Source: Guillardia theta CCMP2712
Taxonomy: Eukaryota; Protista; Cryptophyta
Direction of reading: 5' to 3'
Length of the DNA: 64,000 nt
Assembly (NCBI RefSeq): GCF_000315625.1
Contig: NW_005434671.1
Coordinates: forward strand, 941,798-1,005,797
This document shows, one piece after another, positions 2,438 to 63,044 of the stretch (the stretch's first letter is position 1; each line of letters opens with the position of its first letter). The notes below the pieces were generated by a model, which saw only the letters and a list, made by a program, of their open reading frames with translations, ran no database searches and was not told the origin of the DNA. Position numbers and translations under genes: made by a program.

Positions 2438-5760
<3,323 letters not shown>

Positions 5761-9100: not shown

Positions 9101-9839
9101 TCATCACCTTTGGTTCTCCATGAACTGGAACAGCCCCAGCGCTGCAGTCTGCGGCCAAGGGTGTTACAACAGCACAGCCACCCCGTCCAACGACTCACAC
9201 AATTCTCCCGCTTGCAGCAGAGTTTCATGAGAAACTCACATAGCTCAGCGTCGACCGTCAAGTTCTGTCGCTCACGAGCCAAAAACACTTTCTTGGTCTC
9301 CTCGTCCATGGGAAACATAGAGAGGTCAGTTGGTATCACCATATCCTGGAAGATCCGAGTAAATCTAACAGTAACTTCTGCTAAGATCTTAGTCTACTCA
9401 CGACATCGGAGGTAAGGTTTTCGTGTTCGAGATTGCCGCATGCAGGGCAAAGCTCTGCAGACTCGCTCAGTTCACGCTCTTTGGGATCGCTCTCCTCCGT
9501 CGAGGAAACGGAAAGGTCGAGGGAGGAGCCCTGGGATTCATCGGCAGAAATGTTGTAGTCATCCCTAACAGCATTGAAAGGGCCAGCTTTCTGTTTGTCG
9601 GACAGGTTGTCTGCATTCTCATTTATATGCTCGTGTTTAGCCTTGCTCCTGAACCTCTTCGATCGTTCGGTCTTGTTCTTGAATGCTTCAGGCACGAAAG
9701 ATCTCTTTTCTCCCCCTCTCAACTCCAGCCTGAGATGAACGTTGCGAGTTCCTCTTGCAGGGTCGCATGTGACAAGAAGGTTTCCAAGAGCCAAGATCAA
9801 GAGCAAATTCTGCATGGATCCTCTGCTAATCAAACTCAT
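6130..9839 (-). CDS. Signal-peptide protein with LxLRGG motif and a PPR-like helical segment (multi-exon; 3' end uncertain, possibly ~7380)
   Basis: N-terminus MSLISRGSMQNLLLILALGNLLVTCD…VHLRLELRGG. Internal FIAFCAQSQEWSILIELFEEMRSS|GFIPNDESY resembles a PPR motif. Downstream exons lie between SSR-rich introns. Confidence 0.55.
8432..8578. repeat. Intronic ~20-21 bp minisatellite (GAGAACCAAGGGTTGAAAAC-like)
   Basis: About 6-7 copies, the central ones identical and the flanking ones degenerate. Confidence 0.85.
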
Positions 9840-49339: not shown

Positions 49340-49428
49340 CTGCTGGGTCTAGCCGTCTTCCTTGCAGGAGAGGCTTGCGCTTCTGCTGGGTCTAGCCGTC
49401 TTCCTTGCAGGAGAGGCTTGCGCTTCTG
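49340..49428. repeat. Perfect 43-bp tandem duplication
   Basis: CTGCTGGGTCTAGCCGTCTTCCTTGCAGGAGAGGCTTGCGCTT occurs twice. Confidence 0.9.
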
Positions 49429-50041
49429 CTCTTTGTCCTGAACATGCCGTCGCTCCGATGTGGTGGGAGTAAAGGTTTTCGCATCCTCCTCTTTTCCCAT
49501 TTTTCTGTTGAGGCGAATTTGTTGCCATTCCCTTTCGACAGTCTGGTTCGAAGCCAGCATCACTGCCGCGGCTCCAGGAATATGATCCTGCCCAAGTGGT
49601 GAGAGCGCGAGGTGCGCTATGCCACGGCCCCCAGGATAACTTAGTCGTTCTCGCATCGCACTGCGGAAGCTGAACCAAGTGGGAGGCGAACAGACTATCG
49701 GGGAGCACGCCGATCAAATCGTTTATTGCACACCAATATACATTGAAGCCTTCTTCCCTCCCCTCTTCACGCCTCGCGTCCCCCCTGCTCTCGTCTACCT
49801 CTGCGATCGCCCGCTGCCTCTCCTCGAGCTTCCTCCGCGCAGCAAGGATGTTCTCCAGACAGCTCCCCTTGCTCGCCTTGACGATGCCCGGCGGCTGTCT
49901 CGGGAGGGCTGGAGCTTGGGGGAGGAGGGGCAGGTCTCCGGCTGATCTCTTGCAGGGGAGGGCGACGGGGAGCGTGCGGGGAGGAGGGGAGGGAGCGGCG
50001 GAGAGGGAGACCTCGGACCAGAGAACGGTTACAGGGCGCAT
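49349..50041 (-). CDS. WSEVS/LENILAARRK microprotein family, copy 1 (stop lost by 1-bp deletion; reads through)
   Basis: MRPVTVLWSEVSLSAAP…SCLENILAARRKLEERQRAIAEVDESRG, then a shifted frame. Confidence 0.5.
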   Translation of the reverse strand: MRPVTVLWSEVSLSAAPSPPPRTLPVALPCKRSAGDLPLLPQAPALPRQPPGIVKASKGSCLENILAARRKLEERQRAIAEVDESRGDARREEGREEGFNVYWCAINDLIGVLPDSLFASHLVQLPQCDARTTKLSWGPWHSAPRALTTWAGSYSWSRGSDAGFEPDCRKGMATNSPQQKNGKRGGCENLYSHHIGATACSGQRAEAQASPARKTARPSRSASLSCKEDG

Positions 50042-51051
50042 GGCGTGCGAGAGGCAAGGAAGGGGGAAGGCAGAGCGAGGACAGGCTGGACGAGGGAGAG
50101 GCCGAGGTGATGGACAAGACGAGGCTGGAGAGGAGGGGGCGGGAGAGAGCAGCGAGTCGGAGCCTGATGAAGGAGTCGAAGGGAAGTAACTCCGGTATGG
50201 ACATGCAAGTGACACGGACCTGGCACGGATGTTGGATCCGGGATACGAAACGATGTATCTGTAGATATCTGGTTGGGAAGGGGGTTGCTGACGGAGACAT
50301 ATGGATTCGAACTGAGAGGATTTCGCGGCATTGCAACGAAGGCCCTGGGCACGGACCTGCAGTGACGAACGTAGATATGGAGGTCTGTATTTTGAGATCT
50401 TGGTAGTCAAGTCAGCAACCTCTTGGGAACATCAACTTTTTATGTCAGCATTCTGCCGCTACAGGTTGTCGATGGGATGTTTCCGAATGGCAGACTCGGA
50501 CGTGATCGTCCGACTGTATTGTCATGGTCCATTTACCGCACTATGCTTACCACGTCAGGCCACCGCCCCGGTCGATCAACCAGTCTCCAGGAACTCCCGG
50601 ACCAAGGAAGTGTACGGTGTACTTTACCGACTCGAGTGATGCCGGCGGCCCCGACCTGGGCCCGGCGCTCAGGCTGGCCGCGCGACGGAGCTGTCAGTTG
50701 AAGCACCGATTCATGACTTGTCATGCTGATTCAAGGCGCCACAGTCTGAAGGTCGGCGTGTCCCATGCGAGCATGGCTCGCTGTACGGAGTTGTATGCGA
50801 TGTTCGTGGAGCACTGCGATTCGTCTCGGACAACTTCAAGCAGAGCCTAAGTGGTATGTGTTCACTGCTGCACCACAGGCACTCAAACTTCATGTCAGGA
50901 GGATCCAGCGGCAAAACTTCGTCATCGAAGCGATACTCTAGTTATATTGTACAGCCATCAGCACATAGCAAGACAAGCAAGACCCTCGGCTCACATGGAT
51001 CTTTATTTACAAGCGCTATGTACATTTCCCGCCTATCGTCCCCTCCCCTCC

Positions 51052-51327
51052 TCACGCCTCGCGTCTCCCCCTACTCTCGTCTACCTCTGCGATCGCCCGC
51101 TGCCTCTCCCCGTGCTTCCTCCGCGCAGCAAGGATGTTCTCCAGACAGCTCCCCTTGCTCGCCTTGACGATGCCCGGCGGCTGTCTCGGGAGGGCTGGAG
51201 CTTGGGGGAGGAGGGGAAGGTCTCCGGCTGATCTCTTGCAGGGGAGGGCGACGGGGAGCTTGCGGGGAGGAGGGGAGGGAGCAGCGGAGAGGGAGACCTC
51301 GGACCAGAGAACGGTGACAGGGCGCAT
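51052..51327 (-). CDS. Microprotein family, copy 2 (91 aa)
   Basis: Intact ATG-to-TGA ORF with TGTAAATAAA downstream. Confidence 0.65.
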   Translation of the reverse strand: MRPVTVLWSEVSLSAAPSPPPRKLPVALPCKRSAGDLPLLPQAPALPRQPPGIVKASKGSCLENILAARRKHGERQRAIAEVDESRGRREA

Positions 51328-51921
51328 GCAAGACGAGGCTGGAGAGGAGGGGGCGGGAGAGAGCAGCGAGTCGGAGCCTTATGAAGGAGTCGAAGGGAAG
51401 TAACTCCGGTATGGACATGCAAGTGACACGGACCTGGCACGGACGTTGGATCCGGGATACGAAACGATGTATCTGTAGATATCTGGTTGGAATGGGGGTT
51501 GCTGACGGAGACGTATGGATTCGAACTGAGAGGATTTCGCGGCATTGCAACGAAGGCCCTGGTCACGGACTAGCTGCTGCTTACAGCCGTCAGCAACCTC
51601 TTGGGAACATCACTGCGAAGGAGGTCCGTGTGATAGGGACGTTTTATGTCACAGACGCCTCCGTAAAGACGCCGCCGGATGCGAAGGTTGTTAGTAGATG
51701 AAAAGTGGTGGAGTCCGTGCTATGTATGAAGTCTTACGAGGAATCGTTGTACTTTTACTCTGTTCCAGGAACATGAGATATGCTCTAGTAGTGAGAGGCT
51801 TGCGCCGTGACTCACTTCGGAACAAGTCCGTCACGAGGCTGACAATGATGTCCTTGTGACTATCCTCGACTGACCTCTTGAAGGAGACTCGTGCTCTGGT
51901 CTGCCTCCTGCCACCAGCTTC

Positions 51922-52215
51922 ATGCGCTCCCTCACCATCCGCTGGTCCGAGGTCTCTGTCTCCGCCGCTCCTCATCCCCGCTGTCCCTTCTTGCGCGCTG
52001 TCGCTCCAGCTGGCCCCGCATGTAGGAGAAGAGCGGACGAGTCTAAGGGGAGCATGACGTCCACGAGCTGCCTTGAGAACATTCTAGCGGCGAGGAGAAA
52101 ACATCAGGAAAAGCATCAAGCCCTTCGAACGTCCAAGCACGAGCAAGGGAAGAAAGTGGGTTCAGAGATGGATAGCCGAGGACGGGGAATGGACACGACG
52201 ACATGTAAATGCTAG
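51922..52215 (+). CDS. Microprotein family, diverged copy 3 (97 aa)
   Basis: MRSLTIRWSEVSVSAAP…SCLENILAARRKHQEKHQAL…; TGTAAATAAA just after the stop. Confidence 0.65.
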   Translation: MRSLTIRWSEVSVSAAPHPRCPFLRAVAPAGPACRRRADESKGSMTSTSCLENILAARRKHQEKHQALRTSKHEQGKKVGSEMDSRGRGMDTTTCKC

Positions 52216-52739
52216 AATGTAAATAAACTCTTTGCACTTAAAGACAGAAAGACATCATATCTCCCAAGAAGAGCCAAATACAGTCAACCTGAGCTTCATG
52301 CCTCCCTGTGCTTATTTCCAAGATGCCGCTATCAGCTTGTCCAATGCCATACCAGGTCTTATTTTTTATCATCTTGACGAGCTCGTGGGAAAGCAAGAGT
52401 AATGTTTTTCTTGTTGGTCATCAGTCGATGAGATCTTCTTTCCTCTTCAGAGAATCTCACGCCGCAGATGATCTTAGTATGTCAACAGGATCATCAAACT
52501 GCAGATAGCAGACTGAGGTACCAGGCGGTTTGCACCATGCTGCCATCCCTCCTCCTCCTCATCATCAACTGTCCGCATTCTTGAGCAGCTGAGGTGTCTC
52601 TTTCCAAAGAGGGAACAACCCTCGTGAGTCGTTCTCCTGGAATCTGTTCCGCACGCTGTCGATGCCTTGCGCCCTGTTGACTTTCCCTGTCTGCAGGCAC
52701 ATAAGAGGAGTGTCGTGATGCTTGTCTCTCCTCCACGGG

Positions 52740-54082
52740 TCAGCCTGGTGCTCCAGCTGGACCTTGACTACATCTCTCTGCCCGTAGTAGGACGCAATGT
52801 GCAGCGTTGCCGAATTTCTTTTCCCTCACCTTCACGTCCACTCCAAACTTGGACAGGAGCAACTTAGCCTCGGATCTTTGGTCTGCCGTACTTAGCCGAA
52901 ACATGAAGGTGAGGAGCGTTTTCAGATGTTTGCAGAGCTTCTGATCCTCATGGATACTTGCATCACTCACTACCTTCAACCACAAAAACCTGCACATGGT
53001 GCTGCACATGGTGCTGTATTCTTGCAGGAAGCTTTTCATGTGCATGTTGAAGTCGTCACTGTTGCCCTCATTTCCGGTGACGATAACTTCGTAGTCGATC
53101 TGTTCATCTTCAGAGTCACCGGCATCGCTCACTTCAGACTGACTGACTGTCTCCTCATCCGAGAGCTCACTCTTGTCTCCTGCTGGGGAGCAAAGGTGCG
53201 CTGTGCATACTGACATCTCCCTCATTTGCCTTAAATAGTTTTCCACCACCTACTCACAATTCATATTCGAAAGATATCGAGCCATCTTCGCGAGCCAGTC
53301 CTCGTTAAGGGATGAAGTCACTGGTGTTGCTTCTTCTCCCTGTATTGCTTCTCCATCTTCTTCCATCTCTTCTGCCTCCTCCTCAGGCCTTGAAAGACAG
53401 AAAGCTGAAGCATCTCAATGACCGTACAACTTGTACCCACTGAACATCTTCTTGCTTTAGCCATGGAAGTCGACAAAGATTGATGTCCGACAAGACCGTC
53501 ATACAATTTCTCTGTGAACTCAATCGCTTTATCATCTTCCAAGCCTCCTTTGTGTCCGATCGAAAAGTCAACAATCTTTGCCAGTTTCCTTTTATGTTCG
53601 TTGGAAGCACATGCGTTGAACACCACCAGCTGCGCTTGGGCAGCTCCCTCCTTCTCTGCCTGCAGATTGTGAGCACTGACAGCGTCCATGATGGTTTCAG
53701 AAACGACAATATTTCGGAAGAGGCCGATTGCTTCATTCCCTGCATGGCAACTGAAGTGAAGAATGAGAGGATGGCGATTATTGAAGTCTGTGCCGCTCAG
53801 GATGGCATGAACGTAACGGATACCTCCACTTAACTGCGCGCAGGACAATTCCCCCGCCCCATGCCAGGAGGCCTTGAGCTGACGAAAGATCCTGGACCGG
53901 ATGCGTTTACAAGTCGGATCACCTGAGACGTCTTGCGAGGCCGTGAGACCATCCAGCGCTGCCGTTTCCTTGTTCGCCGAGCGATCCGCCAACCACCACA
54001 GAAAGCGCATCCTGCAAGAGGCCATCAGTGCTGGCGATGATGGGAAGAAAGGCCTTTGGCGGGACGTGCTGAGCATATGCAT
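52740..54082 (-). CDS. CHAT (caspase-HetF-like) domain protein; intact by splicing or a pseudogene
   Basis: PLILHFSCHA (catalytic His), LVVFNACAS (catalytic Cys), FSIG…LEDDKAIEFTEKLYDGL..HQSLSTSM, matching the CHAT pattern HFsGHG/lvvLnAC/D.aa..F...FY..L. An acidic linker and a further domain follow in another frame. Confidence 0.7.
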
Positions 54083-54872
54083 TACGATGCCCTCGGATCT
54101 TCCGCTGTGCTGCTGATTTCAGTTTGCTCCGAGCGAGGTCCGGTATTCAGTCCATCATTGTCAAAAACAAGTGACATGCTGAAGTCCAGGATTAACCCAT
54201 GCCATCCACCTCCAGTCTCCTGCAGTTGCGAAAGTACTGATATGTCTCAAGGGAGGAAAGAGGAAGCCTCTCGCTCCCTCCCGGCCGGCGGAGTCCGACT
54301 CGGAACTCAGCGGCGGGCCGCCATATGTCAACGTCAAGTGCGGCCGCGGCCGCCAAGCCTTGAAGGGTGGCCCGGGCCCGGGCCCGGGGGGGAGGGGACT
54401 GAGTGAGCGTTCGAAACGGACTCGGAACGAGCGTGACGGGCCCGGGGCCTTGCTGGGCCCTCAGCATGTCGCACCTGTCATGCGTTGCTGACGACCCAGT
54501 GACTTTGGGCTAGTGCTAACCACACGGGGTATCCTCTATCACCGCTTCAAGTGTCTGAGTGAAAGAGTCTGATACAGGATATTTTATGTCAGCGACCTCG
54601 TGACCGTTTGAGTCTATAGTGATAGGCTACCTTCGGACCATCTGTCCGACCATTCTAGAATCTCCGGACGTGGCCTCCGTGTGAGCTTTGATGCCACTCG
54701 GGCTCAATGTTCCTCTAAACTCGTCGCCGGATGTTTACTACAGTGACTGATGATTCCAAAAACGGTCACGAGGTCGCTGCGTGACCAGGCAGAGCCGCAT
54801 TCCCCTTGACTTCTTCAACCACTCCGCTGCACCTCAACTTCCCCTCAACCACCAGCGCCGCCAAGACTCGCC

Positions 54873-55127
54873 ATGCGCCCTGTCACCGTTCTCTGGTCCG
54901 AGGTCTCCCTCTCCGCCGCTCCCTCCCCTCCTCCCCGCGCGCTCCCCGTCGCCCTCCCTTGCAAGAGATCAGCCGGAGACCTGCCCCTCCTCCCCCAAGC
55001 TCCAGCCCTCCCGAGACAGCCGCCGGGCATCGTCAAGGCAAGCAAGGGGAGCTGTCTGGAGAACATCCTTGCTGCGCGGAGGAAGCTCGAGGAGAGGCAG
55101 CGGGCGATCATCGGATTGCAGAGGTAG
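54873..55127 (+). CDS. Microprotein family, copy 4 (84 aa, 8-bp insertion variant)
   Basis: ATCGGATT insertion gives C-terminus IIGLQR*. Confidence 0.6.
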   Translation: MRPVTVLWSEVSLSAAPSPPPRALPVALPCKRSAGDLPLLPQAPALPRQPPGIVKASKGSCLENILAARRKLEERQRAIIGLQR

Positions 55128-56063
55128 ACGAGAGTAGGGGGAGACGCGAGGCGTGAGGAGGGGAGGGGACGATGGGCATGTACATAGCGCTTGTAAATAA
55201 AGATCCATGTGAGCTGAGATCGTGAGCGACAGGACATGCAGCACGGCACTCCACCAGAGTTGAGCGATGCCATTGCAGACAGCCGTGCAGACGGAGATGG
55301 CAGGAGCCCTGACTTGTTTGTACCTTGTTGAGCAGGAACGTCATTCATTGTCCGTGACTTTGAGTCAGTCGACGATGAGGCGTCTCAAGATGTGGAGACA
55401 CGAGAGGGATAAGAAGCTTTCCGTTTTTGAAAGCGACGTTGGTTTTGTGTGCATGATCTTCAATTGTTTTCTTCCTTGACGGAAACACAATCGAAGAGAG
55501 CAACTCACTTGCGTTGGTTCGGAGAGTCAAGCTTCTTTTATCAGAACACTTGCGAAATGAACTCCACTCAGACAAGATGATACTCGCATCATTCAGCATA
55601 TGCAAATTTGGACTCGGAACGAGCGTGAGGGCCCGGGGCCTTGCTGGGCCCTCAGCATGTCGCACCTGTCATGCGTTGCTGACGACCCAGTGACTTTGGG
55701 CTAGTGCTAACCACACGGGGTATCCTCTATCACCGCTTCAAGTGTCTGAGTGAAAGAGTCTGATACAGGATATTTTATGTCAGCGACCTCGTGACCGTTT
55801 GAGTCTATAGTGATAGGCCACCTTCGGACCATCTGTCCGACCATTCTAGAATCTCCGGACGTGGCCTCCGTGTGAGCTTTGATGCCACTCGGGCTCAATG
55901 TTCCTCTAAACTCGTCGCCGGATGTTTACTACAGTGACTGATGATTCCAAAAACGGTCACGAGGTCGCTGCGTGACCAGGCAGAGCCGCATTCCCCTTGA
56001 CTTCTTCAACCACTCCGCTGCACCTCAACTTCCCCTCAACCACCAGCGCCGCCAAGACTCGCC

Positions 56064-56318
56064 ATGCGCCCTGTCACCGTTCTCTGGTCCGAGGTCTCCC
56101 TCTCCGCCGCTCCCTCCCCTCCTCCCCGCGCGCTCCCCGTCGCCCTCCCTTGCAAGAGATCAGCCGGAGACCTGCCCCTCCTCCCCCAAGCTCCAGCCCT
56201 CCCGAGACAGCCGCCGGGCATCGTCAAGGCAAGCAAGGGGAGCTGTCTGGAGAACATCCTTGCTGCGCGGAGGAAGCTCGAGGAGAGGCAGCGGGCGATC
56301 ATCGGATTGCAGAGGTAG
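56064..56318 (+). CDS. Microprotein family, copy 5 (84 aa variant)
   Basis: Same as copy 4. Confidence 0.6.
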   Translation: MRPVTVLWSEVSLSAAPSPPPRALPVALPCKRSAGDLPLLPQAPALPRQPPGIVKASKGSCLENILAARRKLEERQRAIIGLQR

Positions 56319-57275
56319 ACGAGAGTAGGGGGAGACGCGAGGCGTGAGGAGGGGAGGGGACGATGGGCTGGACATGTACATAGCGCTTGTAAATAAAGAT
56401 CCATGTGAGCTGAGATCGTGAGCGACAGGACATGCAGCACGGCACTCCACCAGAGTTGAGCGATGCCATTGCAGACAGCCGTGCAGACGGAGATGGCGGG
56501 AGCCCTTTCTTGTTCTTGAGTGATAAGAAGCTTTCCGTTCGAAAGTGGGTTTGTGTGCATGATCTTCAATTGTTTTCTTCCTTGACGGAAACACAATCGA
56601 AGAGAGCAACTCACTTGCGTTGGTTCGGAGAGTCAAGCTTCTTTTATCAGAACACTTGCGAAATGAACTCCACTCAGACAAGATGCTACTCGCAGGGAAG
56701 GATAGCACTGAAAGATCGGGCTTGGATCAGGAGCAGAAGAGTGCCTGAAGCGAGAGTTTGCACGAGGCGAGTGGAGCAAAGAGCACTAGTTCTAGTCTGT
56801 CACACCCCGAAGCTTGACGGGTTGCAGACATCTACTGCGAATACTCAAGGCAACTCCTCTAGATCACACATACTAAAATAAACGTGGCATACAACTTGGG
56901 GAGAGAACGGAAAGATTCGTTGTAGATCGCTGCATCCTGTCAAGCTTCTGGGTGATACATTTCCTTGGTTTCGACTTATTTTTCGCTTACAAGCTGAATG
57001 GCCACTAATGGCATCAATCACGAGAAAGATATTACCGAAACTGATCTCCTCCTCATTCTTCGAATGGGGAGGAAATACTGCGATCATTCCTAGGGTTGAA
57101 ATTCGGAAGAGCTATCATCGCCGTGCATGCTAACGTACTGATATGCAGATAGTATCCCTGCTGTTGATTTTTCGACCCCTGTATCATCCAGTATGTGCCT
57201 ATCTCGATCTCAGCTCACATGGATCTTTATTTACAAGCGCTATGTACATGTCCAGCCCATCGTCCCCTCCCCTCC

Positions 57276-57551
57276 TCACGCCTCGCGTCTCCCCCTACTC
57301 TCGTCTACCTTTGTGATCGCCCGCTGCCTCTCCTCGAGCTTCCTCCGCGCAGCAAGGATGTTCTCCAGACAGCTCCCCTTGCTCGCCTTGACGATGCCCG
57401 GCGGCTGTCTCGGGAGGGCTGGAGCTTGGGGGAGGAGGGGCAGGTCTCCGGCTGATCTCTTGCAGGGGAGGGCGACGGGGAGCGCGCGGGGAGGAGGGGA
57501 GGGAGCGGCGGAGAGGGAGACCTCGGACCAGAGAACGGTGACAGGGCGCAT
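57276..57551 (-). CDS. Microprotein family, copy 6 (91 aa), left palindrome arm
   Basis: Intact ORF; AATAAA downstream on the minus strand. Confidence 0.65.
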   Translation of the reverse strand: MRPVTVLWSEVSLSAAPSPPPRALPVALPCKRSAGDLPLLPQAPALPRQPPGIVKASKGSCLENILAARRKLEERQRAITKVDESRGRREA

Positions 57552-57950
57552 GGCGTGGCAGGAGGAAGGAGGAAGGGGCGGAGTGACAGCAGGCATCTGT
57601 TAGGCATCTTTTGAAGGAGCCAAAGGGGCCCGGTCACGCGGAGAAATGGGATATTTTATGTCAGCGACCTCGTGACCGTTTGAGTCTATAGTGATAGGCT
57701 ACCTTCGGACCATCTGTCCGACCATTCTAGAATCTCCGGACGTGGCCTCCGTGTGAGCTTTGATGCCACTCGGGCTGGTGTAAACTGTAAGATGGATGGG
57801 TCGCCGGATGTTTACTACAGTGACTACTCCAAAAACGGTCACGAGGTCGCTGACATAAAATATCCCATTTCTCCGCGTGACCGGGCCCCTTTGGCTCCTT
57901 CAACAGATGCCTGCTGTCACTCCGCCCTTCCTCCTTCCTCCTGCCACGCC

Positions 57951-58226
57951 ATGCGCCCTGTCACCGTTCTCTGGTCCGAGGTCTCCCTCTCCGCCGCTCC
58001 CTCCCCTCCTCCCCGCGCGCTCCCCGTCGCCCTCCCCTGCAAGAGATCAGCCGGAGACCTGCCCCTCCTCCCCCAAGCTCCAGCCCTCCCGAGACAGCCG
58101 CCGGGCATCGTCAAGGCAAGCAAGGGGAGCTGTCTGGAGAACATCCTTGCTGCGCGGAGGAAGCTCGAGGAGAGGCAGCGGGCGATCGCAGAGGTAGACG
58201 AGAGTAGGGGGAGACGCGAGGCGTGA
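57951..58226 (+). CDS. Microprotein family, copy 7 (91 aa), right palindrome arm
   Basis: Intact ORF with TGTAAATAAA downstream. Confidence 0.65.
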   Translation: MRPVTVLWSEVSLSAAPSPPPRALPVALPCKRSAGDLPLLPQAPALPRQPPGIVKASKGSCLENILAARRKLEERQRAIAEVDESRGRREA

Positions 58227-59138
58227 GGAGGGGAGGGGACGATAGGCGGGACATGTACATAGCGCTTGTAAATAAAGATCCATGTGAGCTGAGATCGTGA
58301 GCGACAGGACATGCAGCACGGCACTCCACCAGAGTTGAGCGATGCCATTGCAGACAGCCGTGCAGACGGAGATGGCAGGAGCCCTGACTTGTTTGTACCT
58401 TGTTGAGCAGGAACGTCATTCATTGTCCGTGACTTTGAGTCAGTCGACGATGAGGCGTCTCAAGATGTGGAGACACGAGAGGGATAAGAAGCTTTCCGTT
58501 TTTGAAAGCGACGTTGGTTTTGTGTGCATGATCTTCAATTGTTTTCTTCCTTGACGGAAACACAATCGAAGAGAGCAACTCACTTGCGTTGGTTCGGAGA
58601 GTCAAGCTTCTTTTATCAGAACACTTGCGAAATGAACTCCACTCAGACAAGATGATACTCGCATCATTCAGCATATGCAAATTTGGACTCGGAACGAGCG
58701 TGAGGGCCCGGGGCCTTGCTGGGCCCTCAGCATGTCGCACCTGTCATGCGTTGCTGACGACCCAGTGACTTTGGGCTAGTGCTAACCACACGGGGTATCC
58801 TCTATCACCGCTTCAAGTGTCTGAGTGAAAGAGTCTGATACAGGATATTTTATGTCAGCGACCTCGTGACCGTTTGAGTCTATAGTGATAGGCCACCTTC
58901 GGACCATCTGTCCGACCATTCTAGAATCTCCGGACGTGGCCTCCGTGTGAGCTTTGATGCCACTCGGGCTCAATGTTCCTCTAAACTCGTCGCCGGATGT
59001 TTACTACAGTGACTGATGATTCCAAAAACGGTCACGAGGTCGCTGCGTGACCAGGCAGAGCCGCATTCCCCTTGACTTCTTCAACCACTCCGCTGCACCT
59101 CAACTTCCCCTCAACCACCAGCGCCGCCAAGACTCGCC

Positions 59139-59393
59139 ATGCGCCCTGTCACCGTTCTCTGGTCCGAGGTCTCCCTCTCCGCCGCTCCCTCCCCTCCTCC
59201 CCGCGCGCTCCCCGTCGCCCTCCCTTGCAAGAGATCAGCCGGAGACCTGCCCCTCCTCCCCCAAGCTCCAGCCCTCCCGAGACAGCCGCCGGGCATCGTC
59301 AAGGCGAGCAAGGGGAGCTGTCTGGAGAACATCCTTGCTGCGCGGAGGAAGCTCGAGGAGAGGCAGCGGGCGATCATCGGATTGCAGAGGTAG
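59139..59393 (+). CDS. Microprotein family, copy 8 (84 aa variant)
   Basis: Same as copy 4. Confidence 0.6.
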   Translation: MRPVTVLWSEVSLSAAPSPPPRALPVALPCKRSAGDLPLLPQAPALPRQPPGIVKASKGSCLENILAARRKLEERQRAIIGLQR

Positions 59394-59826
59394 ACGAGAG
59401 TAGGGGGAGACGCGAGGCGTGAGGAGGGGAGGGGACGATGGGCTGGACATGTACATAGCGCTTGTAAATAAAGATCCATGTGAGCTGAGATCGTGAGCGA
59501 CAGGACATGCAGCACGGTACTCCACCAGAGTTGAGCGATGCCATTGCAGACAGCCGTGCAGACGGAGATGGCGGGCGCCCTGACTTGTTTGTACCTTGTT
59601 GAGCAGGAACGTCATTCATTGTCCGTGACTTTGAGTCAGTCGACGATGAGGCGTCTCAAGATGTGGGGACACGATGAGCACGAATGGAAGCTGTCAGCTG
59701 GAAATGAGATGTAGGAATGGCTCGATATCGGATCACTTTCTATCGATCTGAATTGCATTCATTTTGTTTTGTTGGTAACCTCGAAGGTCTTGATGACTAG
59801 TCTTCGTTGTCCATGTTTCATGTGAA

Positions 59827-62043
59827 TTATTTCTTTTTGGGCTTGCCTTTTTGCTTCATTTTGCTGTCACTCTTCTTGCTCTTTCGCCTGGAATATCATC
59901 TGCATTAAACAAAGCAAACGCAGCATGCTTGTCAAATACCAACCTTTTCTGCTGCCATTTCTTGAAATCTTCCATTGCTTTCTTGTCTCGCTCCTTAAAT
60001 CTGCAGCAAGATTAATTTCCAGCCATTAGTTGGAGGCTGGACTTACTTCCCAACCTTGTTGTAGTATTGCACTTCCTGTACATCACCATAAAAACCACAA
60101 AGTGTGCCAACCGATGCTGTCACCTTAAGCTTAGCCTGACGCTGTGAGGTTTCCCAATCGTGTTGCGCATTGATGGCTTCAACAGAATCGGATCTGCGAA
60201 CAAGAGAATGAAGATACCCTGGGGGATTTTCATAACTTACACATCTGCAATCTTCTTCCATCGAGCAATTTCCTTCTTTTCCTCTGGCGTCATCCGATGC
60301 ATGGGCTCATCTTTTCCATCCCCTCCCCCTTTCTCTCTCGCCAGTGTCTCAAGCTTGGAGCGAAATTCTTTTGTTTTCTTTTTCCTGCATCGTTAATGTT
60401 ACTCAACTTATCATGGTTGAAGATATGCAATCAGTACTTTGTAGAAGTTGAATTGCTTGACTCGAGATCTCCAGGATATGGTGCCAGCTCATCCCAGTCT
60501 CCGCGGCAACCACAATACCTTCTACACTTCGAATACCCGTTTGCAAGATCTTCCCAGACATCATCGTCCATTCTTGGGCCAGGCACCTGATGGGATTCAA
60601 AACAAGTTCAAGGCGCATCTTATATTGCGAATATCAGGGAAGCAATACGTCAATTTTCATTATGTGCTCGGAGAAATCTTGGCCGGTAAGCTGCTGAAGC
60701 AAGCGAGCGGCCCATGTTCGAGCTGGCGCAATGTCCTTTTGTGCCTCTAAAACTCTCTTGGCGAGCTGGATAGCACCTGCAAAACAACTCATTCAAGGAA
60801 TTTTTGGCTCAGTTTGAAGGTTCACACCATTATCAATTATCAGAGATCTGAGTTTGCCAGGCAATTCACTAAGGAAGGATAACGCAGCGCACCCTTGTTC
60901 TCCCACATTGAATCTGGAGAAGGCTCAGACTCATGAGGGTTGTGCAAAGCCAGACAATACCCTTCTCTCTCATATTCATGCGCATGCCCGAAGTTGTGTA
61001 ATGCCTTGATGATTCTTTCAACGCCGCCGCTCTCAGCCACTGCACTCATATATCATCCGATCGGATAGAAAGTTCTCTTGTCACCTTTGCCTGCAAGAGC
61101 CAAGTTCACTTGAAGTTTACCACCAGCTGGACAGCCCGCGTACTCCAGTCCATAAGTGATATGCGTTTCATTCACCACTTTGACCAGAAATGTCCAGATG
61201 AAGATGCAGCCGGCCTCCTGCGGCACCATCACGAACAAGGCAGCGAGGAGCCTGTGAATTTCTCACCTGGACATGAACGCTTTTTTCATGCTTTGCCATT
61301 GCACTCAACACTGTCTCGACTACGCGATTCTCCACGGCCAACTTTGTTCAAGGTCAGTTTGCAGCCACCTTCCTAGCACGTCCTCACCAAACAGTTGGAA
61401 GAGTGGTTGAAAACAAGGTTGGACAGAGCTCTGATCCCTGTGCTCTGTATGTCTGCATTTCCCTCGTGCCGTTTCATGGCTTGAACAAACAATGGGAAGG
61501 CCCCTAACTTTCCTAATAGGTTCTGTTCGCACGTTACGAAATGCTCAACAGGCTGTTGACAACATGCCTGGTTTATCATGTGAGCCCAACCGTCCACTCC
61601 ATACGGAGGTCTTGGTTGTGCATACGCCAAATTCGTCGCTAGACGAAGTCCCTCGAGCACGATCTTTGCAGAGTGGAGGTGGACCTGACAAACAACGTAA
61701 ATCTATGGTACCTTTGAATTCGCGCTACCTTCAAAGTTTCCACGAGCGCCTCACAGCCATTCTTGTTCTTTCCTATCCTGTATTGCTTTTCTCCATCCAG
61801 ACAGATTAAAGACAGAGCATTGAAAGCTTTGTACACGACATGCGGGTCCTTGGTCTTATCCTGCAAGTTCTGAAGGTGGATAGAGCTTGCTCTCTTGCAC
61901 CGTGGGCTCACAGGGGGGACTTTAAATGGAACCACCTTCTTGGCCCCCCCCCGAAGATTCAAGTTACTTCCAGTGTTGATTGTGAACAGGCCACAATGGC
62001 AGGCTTGCAAGGAGACAAGGAGCAACAAGGTCAAGCCTTTCAT
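59827..62043 (-). CDS. Armadillo-like repeat protein with signal peptide, LNLRGG motif and Lys-rich C-terminus
   Basis: MKGLTLLLLVSLQACHC…NLNLRGG; ARM-like GKLGAFPLFVQAMKRHEGNADIQSTGIRALSNLV, NGCEALVETLK and ESGGVERIIKALHNF; tail KSKKSDSKMKQKGKPKKK*. Confidence 0.75.
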
Positions 62044-63044
62044 CACAGATACCGCCGTTTTTCAACGTCAATTATGCTCGCCAACAACTCTAGCGCAGTC
62101 AAGCTGTGCCTGGTCCCATATCAAGGCACAGGGATCGTTACCATGAGCTTTGTTTATCCTTTCCGCTTCCTCTCTCTCTTCCTCGTCCCCTCCTCTTATC
62201 CTCTTCTTCTCTTCTCCTACTACCTGGCTCTGCCATGCCGATCTGCGGACGCATCGATCATGTGTAGGCCCTCTTCCCCAGAAGGCCCGGGCCAACCGGC
62301 AGCGTCAAGTCCGAGTGCTGCCTCCGACTGATCACTATTGACAAATCTTGTGTGCCGGCCCCCACCTGCTTCTCGCGCGTTCACGAGGAACGCACAGGGA
62401 CGGAGGTTCCGCTCAGCTCACGGCAAGAAAGAGAAAACCCCCGACACTGATCGATCAGACTTCTGGGGGATCAAAGCAGCGACCTGTCTTGGGCGAGAGT
62501 AGAAGCCAAGGATTTCAGTGTCTCTATCGTCGTGTAGTAGGGACTCGTGAACATGTCCGATCAAGCCAACCAAGCTTCCCACACAGCCGAGAGCACCATC
62601 CCATCTGGAGCGAGGAAGATGACCGATCAAGAACGAACAGAACATGTTGCTAACGTGATAGAAGCTCTCACGAAGCAGGTGATGTATTGATTTGCACTTG
62701 CAGCAATGGCTGTCTAACATGTTGCAGGGCTTGGCGATGTCCAATCTTCCCGAGGACATCAAAGGGAAGCTTGATGACTTCGTAAAGAATGGCTCTGCCT
62801 GTGAGCTGCAGATTCCAACCCCCAAGGGTTTTGTTTATTGCAAGTTGACAAATCTGATAGACAAGTGAATCTTGATTAGTCTAGTCATCGCCAGGGTACC
62901 CGAGGACACGGATTTGGTAGACCTTTATTGCTTCCTTGCTCAGCTTTACATTTGGTTACTGTACAAAAAACAACCCCGGCACATGTATGTCAGGGCACCT
63001 ATGAATCTACTGCAGCACTCTGCAAGTCCACAACCTCACTCTCG

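Follow-up and report, generated by a model that had tools for sequence, protein, structure and literature searches.

An armadillo-repeat gene of Guillardia theta with a predicted periplastid-type leader ending in a ubiquitin-tail-like box, a candidate processing site

Examination of a 64,000-nucleotide stretch of the Guillardia theta genome (the window) showed an armadillo-repeat gene on the minus strand (59827..62043), which opens with an ATG at 62043 and consists of 525 codons in 14 exons, separated by 13 introns. The coding region was mapped by spliced alignment of the MMETSP transcript ORFs P0001 and P0023, which together span the whole gene. P0021, a protein from Hanusia phi, was aligned in the same way; identity to Hanusia phi is 61–83%. 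Exons 1–5 lie at 62043-61729, 61684-61568, 61522-61388, 61341-61267 and 61217-61085, and exons 6–10 at 61039-60961, 60913-60828, 60776-60649, 60586-60438 and 60384-60241. Exons 11–14, whose borders were placed by hand and are approximate, lie at 60193-60124, 60075-60047, 60000-59941 and 59887-59827 (all minus strand). Nine introns were resolved exactly and measure 44–62 nt. A 45-nt GC-AG intron (61523..61567, minus strand) was recognized from P0001, which lacks these 15 codons, GC...AG being the only borders that fit. The two transcript ORFs are divided by a frameshift, the A6 run at 61281-61286 being longer by a single A in the transcript. We judged this to be an assembly or slippage error because the genomic frame is continuous and agrees with the orthologues. 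In the environmental orthologue ORFs, similarity ends where exon 1 ends, which suggests that the position of the intron after exon 1 is shared. The joined spliced protein model was used for length and charge counts, and all searches used exons or database proteins.

Exon 1 (61729..62043, minus strand) contains 105 codons, which cover the leader and the helices with which the conserved mature part opens, and its translation is 100% identical to that of P0001. Translation of the frame revealed a stop at 62062..62064 (minus strand), 21 nt 5' of the start codon. This stop bounds the ORF, so that the ATG at 62043 is the earliest possible start within exon 1. The start Met of P0001 is the same residue, and this ORF also confirms the first four splices. 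No further Met was found in the frame translation of exon 1. A start downstream of the LNLRGG motif, which would remove the motif from the protein, was therefore rejected on the basis of the upstream stop, the transcript ORF beginning at the same Met, and the absence of any other Met before the conserved body.

A signal peptide followed by an LNLRGG presequence had been read from the sequence at 61945-62043, and this interval corresponds exactly to residues 1–33 of the protein, comprising a signal peptide, a spacer and the LNLRGG box, with A-K-K following. The predicted signal peptide (residues 1–17, 61993..62043, minus strand) has a basic n-region (M-K-G), an uncharged h-region of nine hydrophobic residues and a c-region of Q-A-C-H-C, and its best 8-residue Kyte–Doolittle mean is 2.7. 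The prediction used a simple hydrophobicity rule, with the cleavage site placed by the −3/−1 rule only (small residues at −3 and −1), and by these rules the leader begins with an N-terminal ER signal peptide, as do leaders of the periplastid compartment (PPC) type. Cuts predicted after Q-A or C-H-C leave C or G at +1, with Phe at +6 or +3, so that neither Phe nor another aromatic residue occupies the predicted +1 position, as in PPC-type leaders. The transit-peptide-like spacer (residues 18–27, G-L-F-T-I-N-T-G-S-N, 61963..61992, minus strand) contains no acidic residue and no Phe at the likely +1. Spacers of comparable length are present in other leaders of the Guillardia theta genome, and the transit-peptide-like part of such leaders may be only 9 residues long (PMC3017844).

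The LNLRGG box (residues 28–33, 61945..61962, minus strand) looks like the tail of ubiquitin or NEDD8, and is the proposed end of the leader. Ubiquitin ends in LRLRGG and NEDD8 in LALRGG, and the box is identical to the ubiquitin tail at five of six residues. Only 27 residues precede it, 17 of which are signal peptide, and the beta-grasp ubiquitin fold is absent. A Pfam scan of exon 1 gave no ubiquitin match, and the single-exon Pfam scans were empty. The lack of a ubiquitin fold before the box places the gene outside the ubiquitin family, with a mimic of the tail only.

Comparison with orthologues showed that L-x-L-R-G-G is kept in all six informative ones, while the leader upstream of it cannot be aligned. 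Upstream of the mature part, alignment A1 is invariant at L28, L30, R31, G32 and G33 and nowhere else, and the five environmental orthologues that it includes have leaders of 55–95 residues that are mutually unalignable. The sixth orthologue, P0027, carries LTLRGG, and the variants seen among the orthologues are LQ-, LR-, LK- and LT-LRGG. Thus, the pattern proposed as a check on the motif, conservation of the box within a presequence that diverges beyond alignment, was the one observed. More distant orthologues from marine metagenomes (P0024, P0025 and P0026) contain V-K-[VLF]-K-G at the corresponding place and no LRGG, indicating that the box is not required everywhere in this protein family. 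As judged from the sequences, the box is placed precisely where the leader gives way to the mature protein.

The mature protein has an armadillo-repeat body encoded by exons 1–8 (approximately 60649..61880, minus strand), assigned from weak Pfam ARM matches and an AlphaFold model of the orthologue P0024. None of the Pfam ARM models reached its gathering score on the armadillo protein: P0001 gave 20.4 bits for ARM_ARMC5 (cut-off 79.9) and 16.8 bits for ARM_LRRK2 (cut-off 26.2). ARM_LRRK2 gave 22.2 bits for P0024, and scored above the cut-off for the relative P0022. The AlphaFold model of P0024:85-480 (pLDDT 74, pTM 0.75) contains about 20 helices in repeating triplets. This agrees with the solenoid that defines armadillo proteins, in which three-helix units of about 42 residues follow one another in tandem, and the agreement holds for this orthologue, rather than for the window's own spliced protein. 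The top Foldseek matches of the model are designed armadillo proteins (target-normalised TM about 0.8, probability 1.00), and it also resembles APC-ARM, KAP3 and beta-catenin. A protein-atlas search with P0024 returned generic ARM look-alikes only, all below 0.9. On the modelled orthologue, the fold of the body is an armadillo solenoid, in line with the ARM-like repeats previously noted in the translation. The predicted right-handed solenoid of three-helix repeats is the fold of importin-alpha, beta-catenin, APC, KAP3, ARMC and LRRK2 ARM proteins; the present protein differs from these in its sub-cut-off Pfam ARM scores, the lack of an IBB domain, and a cysteine motif and basic tail of its own. 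Pfam scans of P0001, P0021, P0023 and P0024, at E values of up to 1-5, revealed no IBB domain or importin family, and identity as an importin-alpha was rejected for want of an IBB domain.

Exon 9 (60438..60586, minus strand) encodes a conserved V-P-G-P and a Y-C-G-C-x-G-x-W cysteine motif, shared by P0021, P0023, P0024, P0025 and P0026, in a region where AlphaFold confidence is low. It is followed by a basic C-terminal region (exons 10–14, 59827..60384, minus strand), identified from the transcript ORF P0023 and from its composition, which begins with a K-K-K-K-T-K cluster and ends with a Lys-rich 20-mer. K and R account for 12 of the last 20 residues, and for 40 of the last 125, compared with 20 D or E. 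The very basic C-terminus described from the letters alone is therefore present in the transcribed ORF. Relatives of the armadillo protein turned up only among cryptophyte-like sequences and on a few contigs of marine eukaryotes.

A second gene in the window carries a related motif, as the sequence-only reading had claimed. Its first exon or ORF (9381..9839, minus strand) has a signal-peptide-like start and LELRGG at 9711-9728, matched no Pfam family, and is unrelated to the armadillo gene. To investigate the occurrence of the motif in the genome, an LRLRGG-type DNA pattern was searched, giving 353 sites, and the first 30 in contig order were examined. A signal-peptide-like in-frame Met was present 30–110 residues upstream in 18 of these 30, compared with a base rate of 3.5% of six-frame positions (binomial P ~4e-19). 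In an unselected 200 kb, such a start preceded LRGG in 3 of 15 cases and the other orderings of these residues in 2 of 90 (Fisher p = 0.02), a small permutation control with 11 other orderings of the four residues. The positional base rate and this permutation test serve as the control for enrichment; a matched GGRLRL-type pattern was found at 193 places (counts only), and raw counts against backward controls (353 versus 255, and 193 versus 441) are too noisy alone. Since the motif is conserved in orthologues and strongly enriched behind signal peptides, we conclude from the sequences that LxLRGG is more than chance.

Many of the other leaders carry LRLRGG, identical to the ubiquitin tail at all six residues. 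None of the 18 leaders has Phe at +1 of the likely cut, and several contain early acidic residues, features that match the PPC class described in PMC12136025, in which the transit-peptide-like region does not start with Phe or any other aromatic residue after signal-peptide cleavage (position +1). The leader L036 precedes an eEF1A copy, and its LRLRGG is followed directly by the residue that corresponds to native residue 2 in eEF1A structures; the Pfam GTP_EFTU match begins at model position 1. A methyltransferase and a RETICULATA-like protein are among the further cargoes behind LRLRGG-type leaders. Another candidate, L048, was considered as a Trm112 homologue whose first residue would adjoin the box, and was dropped, as Pfam and PDB sequence searches gave no support. 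The suggestion of a widespread signal in non-homologous genes is thus borne out by the sampled sites, and the term convergent is reasonable, in that unrelated cargoes gained an identical leader end.

In Guillardia theta, proteins of cytosolic and nuclear type are imported via the ER into the periplastid compartment and nucleomorph, and the PPC of cryptophytes holds 80S ribosomes. Armadillo repeats and a Lys-rich tail had been considered unexpected behind a signal peptide, and this import route would explain them there. We consider it likely, from the sequence features, that the armadillo gene encodes a protein with a PPC leader whose ubiquitin/NEDD8-tail-like end is a processing site. The signal peptide would probably direct the 525-aa protein into the ER, from which it would cross the periplastid membrane into the PPC, the relict red-algal cytoplasm, and possibly pass on into the nucleomorph. 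The leader would be of the PPC type: its signal peptide is followed by a short transit-peptide-like spacer that lacks Phe at +1, and L-x-L-R-G-G forms its end. A PPC protease of the deubiquitinase or deneddylase type, specific for the ubiquitin tail and perhaps working together with the SELMA translocon, which depends on ubiquitin, would recognize the box and cut after GG, so that the mature protein would begin at A34, as with ubiquitin-fusion precursors. The designed armadillo proteins that are the best structural matches bind Lys/Arg peptides. The protein may bind peptides or other proteins in one of these two compartments, the PPC or the nucleomorph, and the basic tail is perhaps a nuclear-type import signal or a ligand of the protein's own groove.

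With regard to the enzyme, a more far-reaching reading, tentative and a little short of probable, is that the long-postulated PPC leader peptidase of cryptophytes is a ubiquitin-/NEDD8-tail-specific protease, a single enzyme that would strip SELMA-added ubiquitin and trim the leader at Gly-Gly, the leaders having evolved as tail mimics. The rules used for the signal peptide and its cut site (hydrophobicity and −3/−1) limit the main explanation, a PPC leader processed at its tail-like end, and most deubiquitinases require the folded ubiquitin body, whereas here only 10 residues lie between signal peptide and box. The usual need for a ubiquitin fold, together with the fact that we know of no enzyme for the proposed GG cleavage, favors instead a box that functions in PPC leaders without ubiquitin-type cleavage, its likeness to the ubiquitin tail being coincidental. 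It could then be cut by a leader peptidase of another kind, act as a mark for PPC sorting or retention as opposed to onward passage through the envelope, or provide the positive charge for a minimal transit peptide. The V-K-[VLF]-K-G of the distant orthologues, found in place of LRGG, counts against a tail mimic, and being basic and hydrophobic suggests that charge or pattern might matter; in the armadillo gene, the box Arg is the sole charged residue of the spacer. However, many leaders share all six residues of the ubiquitin tail, and the orthologues keep the two Gly and the two Leu without exception, which a mere need for charge fails to explain. In addition, the box directly adjoins the point where native eEF1A begins, as a cleavage site predicts. 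On balance we regard this alternative as rather unlikely.

Two further readings would detach the box from the complex plastid or from any function. A signal peptide alone routes a protein to the ER, and post-signal-peptide motifs such as PEXEL, RxLR and RXL exist in other protists, so that the armadillo protein could be an ordinary secretory or ER-lumenal protein with a pro-peptide site. This is very improbable, because the cargoes (eEF1A, a methyltransferase, and an armadillo protein with a basic tail) are cytosolic or nuclear in type, eEF1A has no plausible role in a secretory lumen but would in a compartment with 80S ribosomes, and the motif matches no known secretory convertase site. Six-frame translation of the window also contains 12 copies of LRGG, most of which belong to a repeated element that has no signal peptide, as might be expected of a chance match; a functionless motif, or a gene-model artefact with the true start elsewhere, is nevertheless close to refuted by the upstream stop, the transcript with the same start, the six of six informative orthologues, and the enrichment behind signal peptides.

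Returning to the proposed cleavage by a tail-specific protease, several known systems offer comparisons. Deubiquitinases and deneddylases cut ubiquitin and NEDD8 precursors after LRLRGG and LALRGG, and in fusion precursors (polyubiquitin and ubiquitin–ribosomal protein) the same tail stands directly before the residue with which the downstream protein natively starts. In contrast, the tail in the leaders is preceded by a signal peptide and then by a spacer that is variable and unstructured, with no ubiquitin fold, and its cleavage is a prediction. The coronavirus protease PLpro has LXGG specificity, so that a ubiquitin-tail tetrapeptide suffices as a protease site without the ubiquitin body; the biology of viral papain-like proteases is unrelated, and they are a precedent for the mechanism only. 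Plasmodium PEXEL, Toxoplasma TEXEL, oomycete RxLR and diatom RXL share the layout of a signal peptide, a spacer of ~10–60 residues and a short motif in unrelated proteins, but differ in sequence, presumed compartment and protease class (aspartic or other, in the ER or Golgi). The bipartite PPC signals of cryptophytes and diatoms (SELMA, ERAD-derived import) have the same signal peptide, short hydroxylated spacer and cytosolic-type cargo; the published descriptions searched define the class by the residues after the signal-peptide cut, whereas the leader here ends in an L-x-L-R-G-G box. Like the hypothetical protease, the diatom PPC deubiquitinase ptDUP and the 'TPL peptidase' are expected in the PPC, at the same step after SELMA translocation. 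The TPL peptidase is a postulate, its enzyme unidentified (PMC5756292), and ptDUP is reported absent from cryptophytes, where an alternative enzyme is expected (PMC12412216). No description of an LxLRGG box at a leader end was found in the literature searched, including PMC12136025, PMC3017844, PMC5756292 and PMC12412216.

In reviews of complex plastids, the removal of leaders from PPC-resident proteins is assigned to a 'TPL peptidase' that has neither a name nor a cleavage site, and the only proposed periplastid deubiquitinase is missing in cryptophytes. A conserved box resembling the ubiquitin tail, placed precisely where many leaders end, provides a testable candidate cleavage site and narrows the class of enzyme. 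If the proposal is correct, a ubiquitin-tail-specific peptidase would make up for the lack of ptDUP in cryptophytes. The rule of a signal peptide followed by L-x-L-R-G-G would then list the periplastid and nucleomorph proteome, armadillo protein included, and offer a practical way to predict the nuclear genes whose products work in the relict cytoplasm and the nucleomorph. The armadillo protein, lineage-restricted and with a nuclear-type basic tail, is a candidate periplastid or nucleomorph factor.

The gene under study lies on the minus strand and opens with an ATG at 62043-62041; codons 1-33 run as far as 61945, exactly as the sequence-only reading had placed and interpreted the leader. Within 62043-61945, an n-region (M-K-G) is followed by a nine-residue uncharged hydrophobic core, by Q-A-C-H-C, by the spacer G-L-F-T-I-N-T-G-S-N and, at 61962-61945, by the box L-N-L-R-G-G (residues 28-33), with A-K-K next. 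When exon 1 alone was searched against 1.8 billion representative proteins, an MMETSP transcript ORF (P0001) showed 100% identity across all 105 exon-1 codons and began at the same Met. An in-frame stop precedes the ATG at 62062-64, and frame translation of exon 1 gave no second Met, so that the proposed start was confirmed. A 0.5-kb divergent intergenic region (62044-62552), containing a long CT-rich tract (~62150-62230), separates the gene from a plus-strand gene starting near 62553 (M-S-D-Q-A-N-Q...).

Mapping of P0001, of a second ORF on the same transcript encoding the remainder of the protein (P0023), and of a Hanusia phi protein (P0021) on the window gave 14 exons from 62043 to 59827 (525 codons), and the gene is single copy in the assembly. 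Nine of the 13 introns were placed exactly (44-62 nt), while the final four exons, all short, had their borders assigned manually; the joined spliced model served for counts only, and searches used exon sequences or database proteins. The intron at 61523-61567 (minus strand) is GC-AG, not GT-AG, and the transcript-derived protein skips precisely these 15 codons. At an A6 run (61281-61286, minus strand), the MMETSP transcript has one extra A relative to the genome, and as a result its reading frame is broken into two ORFs, P0001 (230 aa) and P0023 (319 aa). At this position we followed the genome, whose uninterrupted frame agrees with that of the orthologues, and the extra A is probably a transcript-assembly error or polymerase slippage.

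ARM-like repeats and a strongly basic C-terminus had been noticed in the translation, and both features were recovered. Pfam returned ARM-clan matches only, all sub-threshold. For a distant marine orthologue (P0024, residues 85-480), AlphaFold predicted a solenoid of helical repeats (pLDDT 74, pTM 0.75), and the best PDB matches of this model were designed armadillo proteins, APC-ARM, KAP3 and beta-catenin. A conserved Y-C-G-C-x-G-x-W motif lies C-terminal to the repeats. The last 125 residues contain 40 Lys/Arg versus 20 Asp/Glu; the basic region opens with K-K-K-K-T-K, and the final 20-mer has 12 basic residues. Importin-alpha was considered and rejected as an identity, because Pfam found no IBB domain in the protein.

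Six N-terminus-bearing relatives, environmental or transcript-derived (P0004, P0005, P0007, P0008, P0009, P0027), were compared. Those from environmental contigs are taken as cryptophyte relatives, as judged solely by similarity and by ORFs ending at the same place. All six have a signal-peptide-like segment followed by a spacer of 45-65 residues that cannot be aligned, either among the relatives or with the G. theta gene. After the spacer, 6/6 carry L-Q/R/K/T-L-R-G-G, and the conserved mature sequence starts immediately thereafter. In the orthologue alignment, L28, L30, R31, G32 and G33 are the only invariant columns ahead of the mature part; the expectation that orthologues would keep the box while the presequence diverged was thus borne out. 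Three more distant orthologues (P0024-26; 37% identity) are encoded by an intronless gene (3001-4845 of Tara Oceans contig L052) in a GC-rich marine eukaryote. They have a signal peptide, and on this comparison the box is lineage-restricted, because they carry V-K-[VLF]-K-G in its position instead. Their leader includes A-S-F-A-P, and the neighboring genes on L052 encode Rad51 and DNA polymerase delta subunit 4.

Nowhere does the box mark a mature N-terminus more clearly, as read from the alignment, than in an eEF1A copy at a second G. theta locus (L036, G000:C3:1063784-1066800, minus strand, ~1332-1520), where LRLRGG, preceded by a spacer and a signal peptide, abuts the protein. Residue 2 of eEF1A structures pairs with the residue that immediately follows the box, the leader replacing the initiator Met only, so that the box sits precisely where leader and mature protein meet. 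This copy is likely a periplastid translation factor. At a further locus (L037, G000:C4:66602-69618, plus strand from 1519), a RETICULATA-like membrane protein (Pfam PF11891) follows a signal peptide and LRLRGG, so that the box is not restricted to soluble cargo.

The sequence-only reading had suggested a widespread signal shared by two non-homologous genes of the window. The second gene (ORF 9381-9839, LELRGG at 9711-9728) proved to be a real case unrelated to the armadillo gene, and the wider claim was supported by a sample of the genome. The DNA pattern of an LRLRGG-type hexapeptide occurs at 353 places in the 87-Mb assembly. Among the first 30 by contig order, 18 have a same-frame upstream Met and a hydrophobic core 30-110 residues ahead of the box, compared with a base rate of 3.5%, taken over every six-frame position of 200 unselected kb from the same contig (binomial P ~4e-19); a nineteenth (L050) has the core and lacks a same-exon Met. 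None of the 30 was ubiquitin itself. From this sample, ~60% of the 353 places are estimated to lie behind such a start. In the same 200 kb, LRGG followed a signal-peptide-like start in 3/15 cases, versus 2/90 for 11 other orderings of these residues (Fisher p = 0.02). The cargo is mutually unrelated, including an EF-Tu-type GTPase, a methyltransferase, a RETICULATA-like protein and several proteins without family. Raw LRGG counts mislead, because the remaining LRGG strings of the window come mostly from a repeated element (49349-59422, both strands, about eight copies) that reads L-L-R-G-G in one frame without a signal peptide, inflating naive totals. A full-text search, covering few subscription papers, found no paper on L-x-L-R-G-G for Guillardia, cryptophytes, plastid, periplastid or nucleomorph, an absence that is not proof of novelty; the sole match (PMC2222254) concerns LRGGG of an Omp85 protein and is unrelated.

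The matches to the MMETSP transcript and to Hanusia phi agree with an origin in the cryptophyte Guillardia theta. The cryptophyte periplastid compartment (PPC) and nucleomorph take in cytosolic and nuclear-type proteins via the ER, and PPC leaders combine a signal peptide with a transit-peptide-like (TPL) part without the +1 Phe typical of stromal proteins (PMC12136025, PMC5756292). Phe at the likely +1 is absent from all 18 sampled leaders and from the armadillo leader, and early acidic residues occur in several leaders. TPL parts as short as nine residues are possible, and positive charge is not required for crossing the periplastid membrane (PMC3017844). Entry through the ER and the sufficiency of a short TPL part would account for armadillo repeats and a Lys-rich tail behind a signal peptide, and either the periplastid space or the nucleomorph is the probable location of the armadillo protein.

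Ubiquitin and NEDD8 both end in L-x-L-R-G-G, with R at position x in ubiquitin and A in NEDD8. Ubiquitin-fusion precursors are cut directly after Gly-Gly, and the downstream protein is thereby released starting at its native first residue. SELMA, the periplastid import machine, is ubiquitin-dependent. A 'TPL peptidase' of the PPC has been postulated, the enzyme still being unidentified (PMC5756292), and cryptophytes reportedly lack ptDUP, the periplastid deubiquitinase of diatoms, which is 'possibly replaced by an alternative enzyme' (PMC12412216). Because of these two gaps, together with the resemblance to ubiquitin and the nature of SELMA, we propose that a ubiquitin-tail-specific protease within the PPC would trim box-bearing leaders after Gly-Gly. 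The main rival is that the box is functional but recognized by a different peptidase or receptor; most deubiquitinases bind the ubiquitin body too, which is a caveat to our proposal. We regard cleavage of these leaders by a ubiquitin-type protease as a well-motivated hypothesis.
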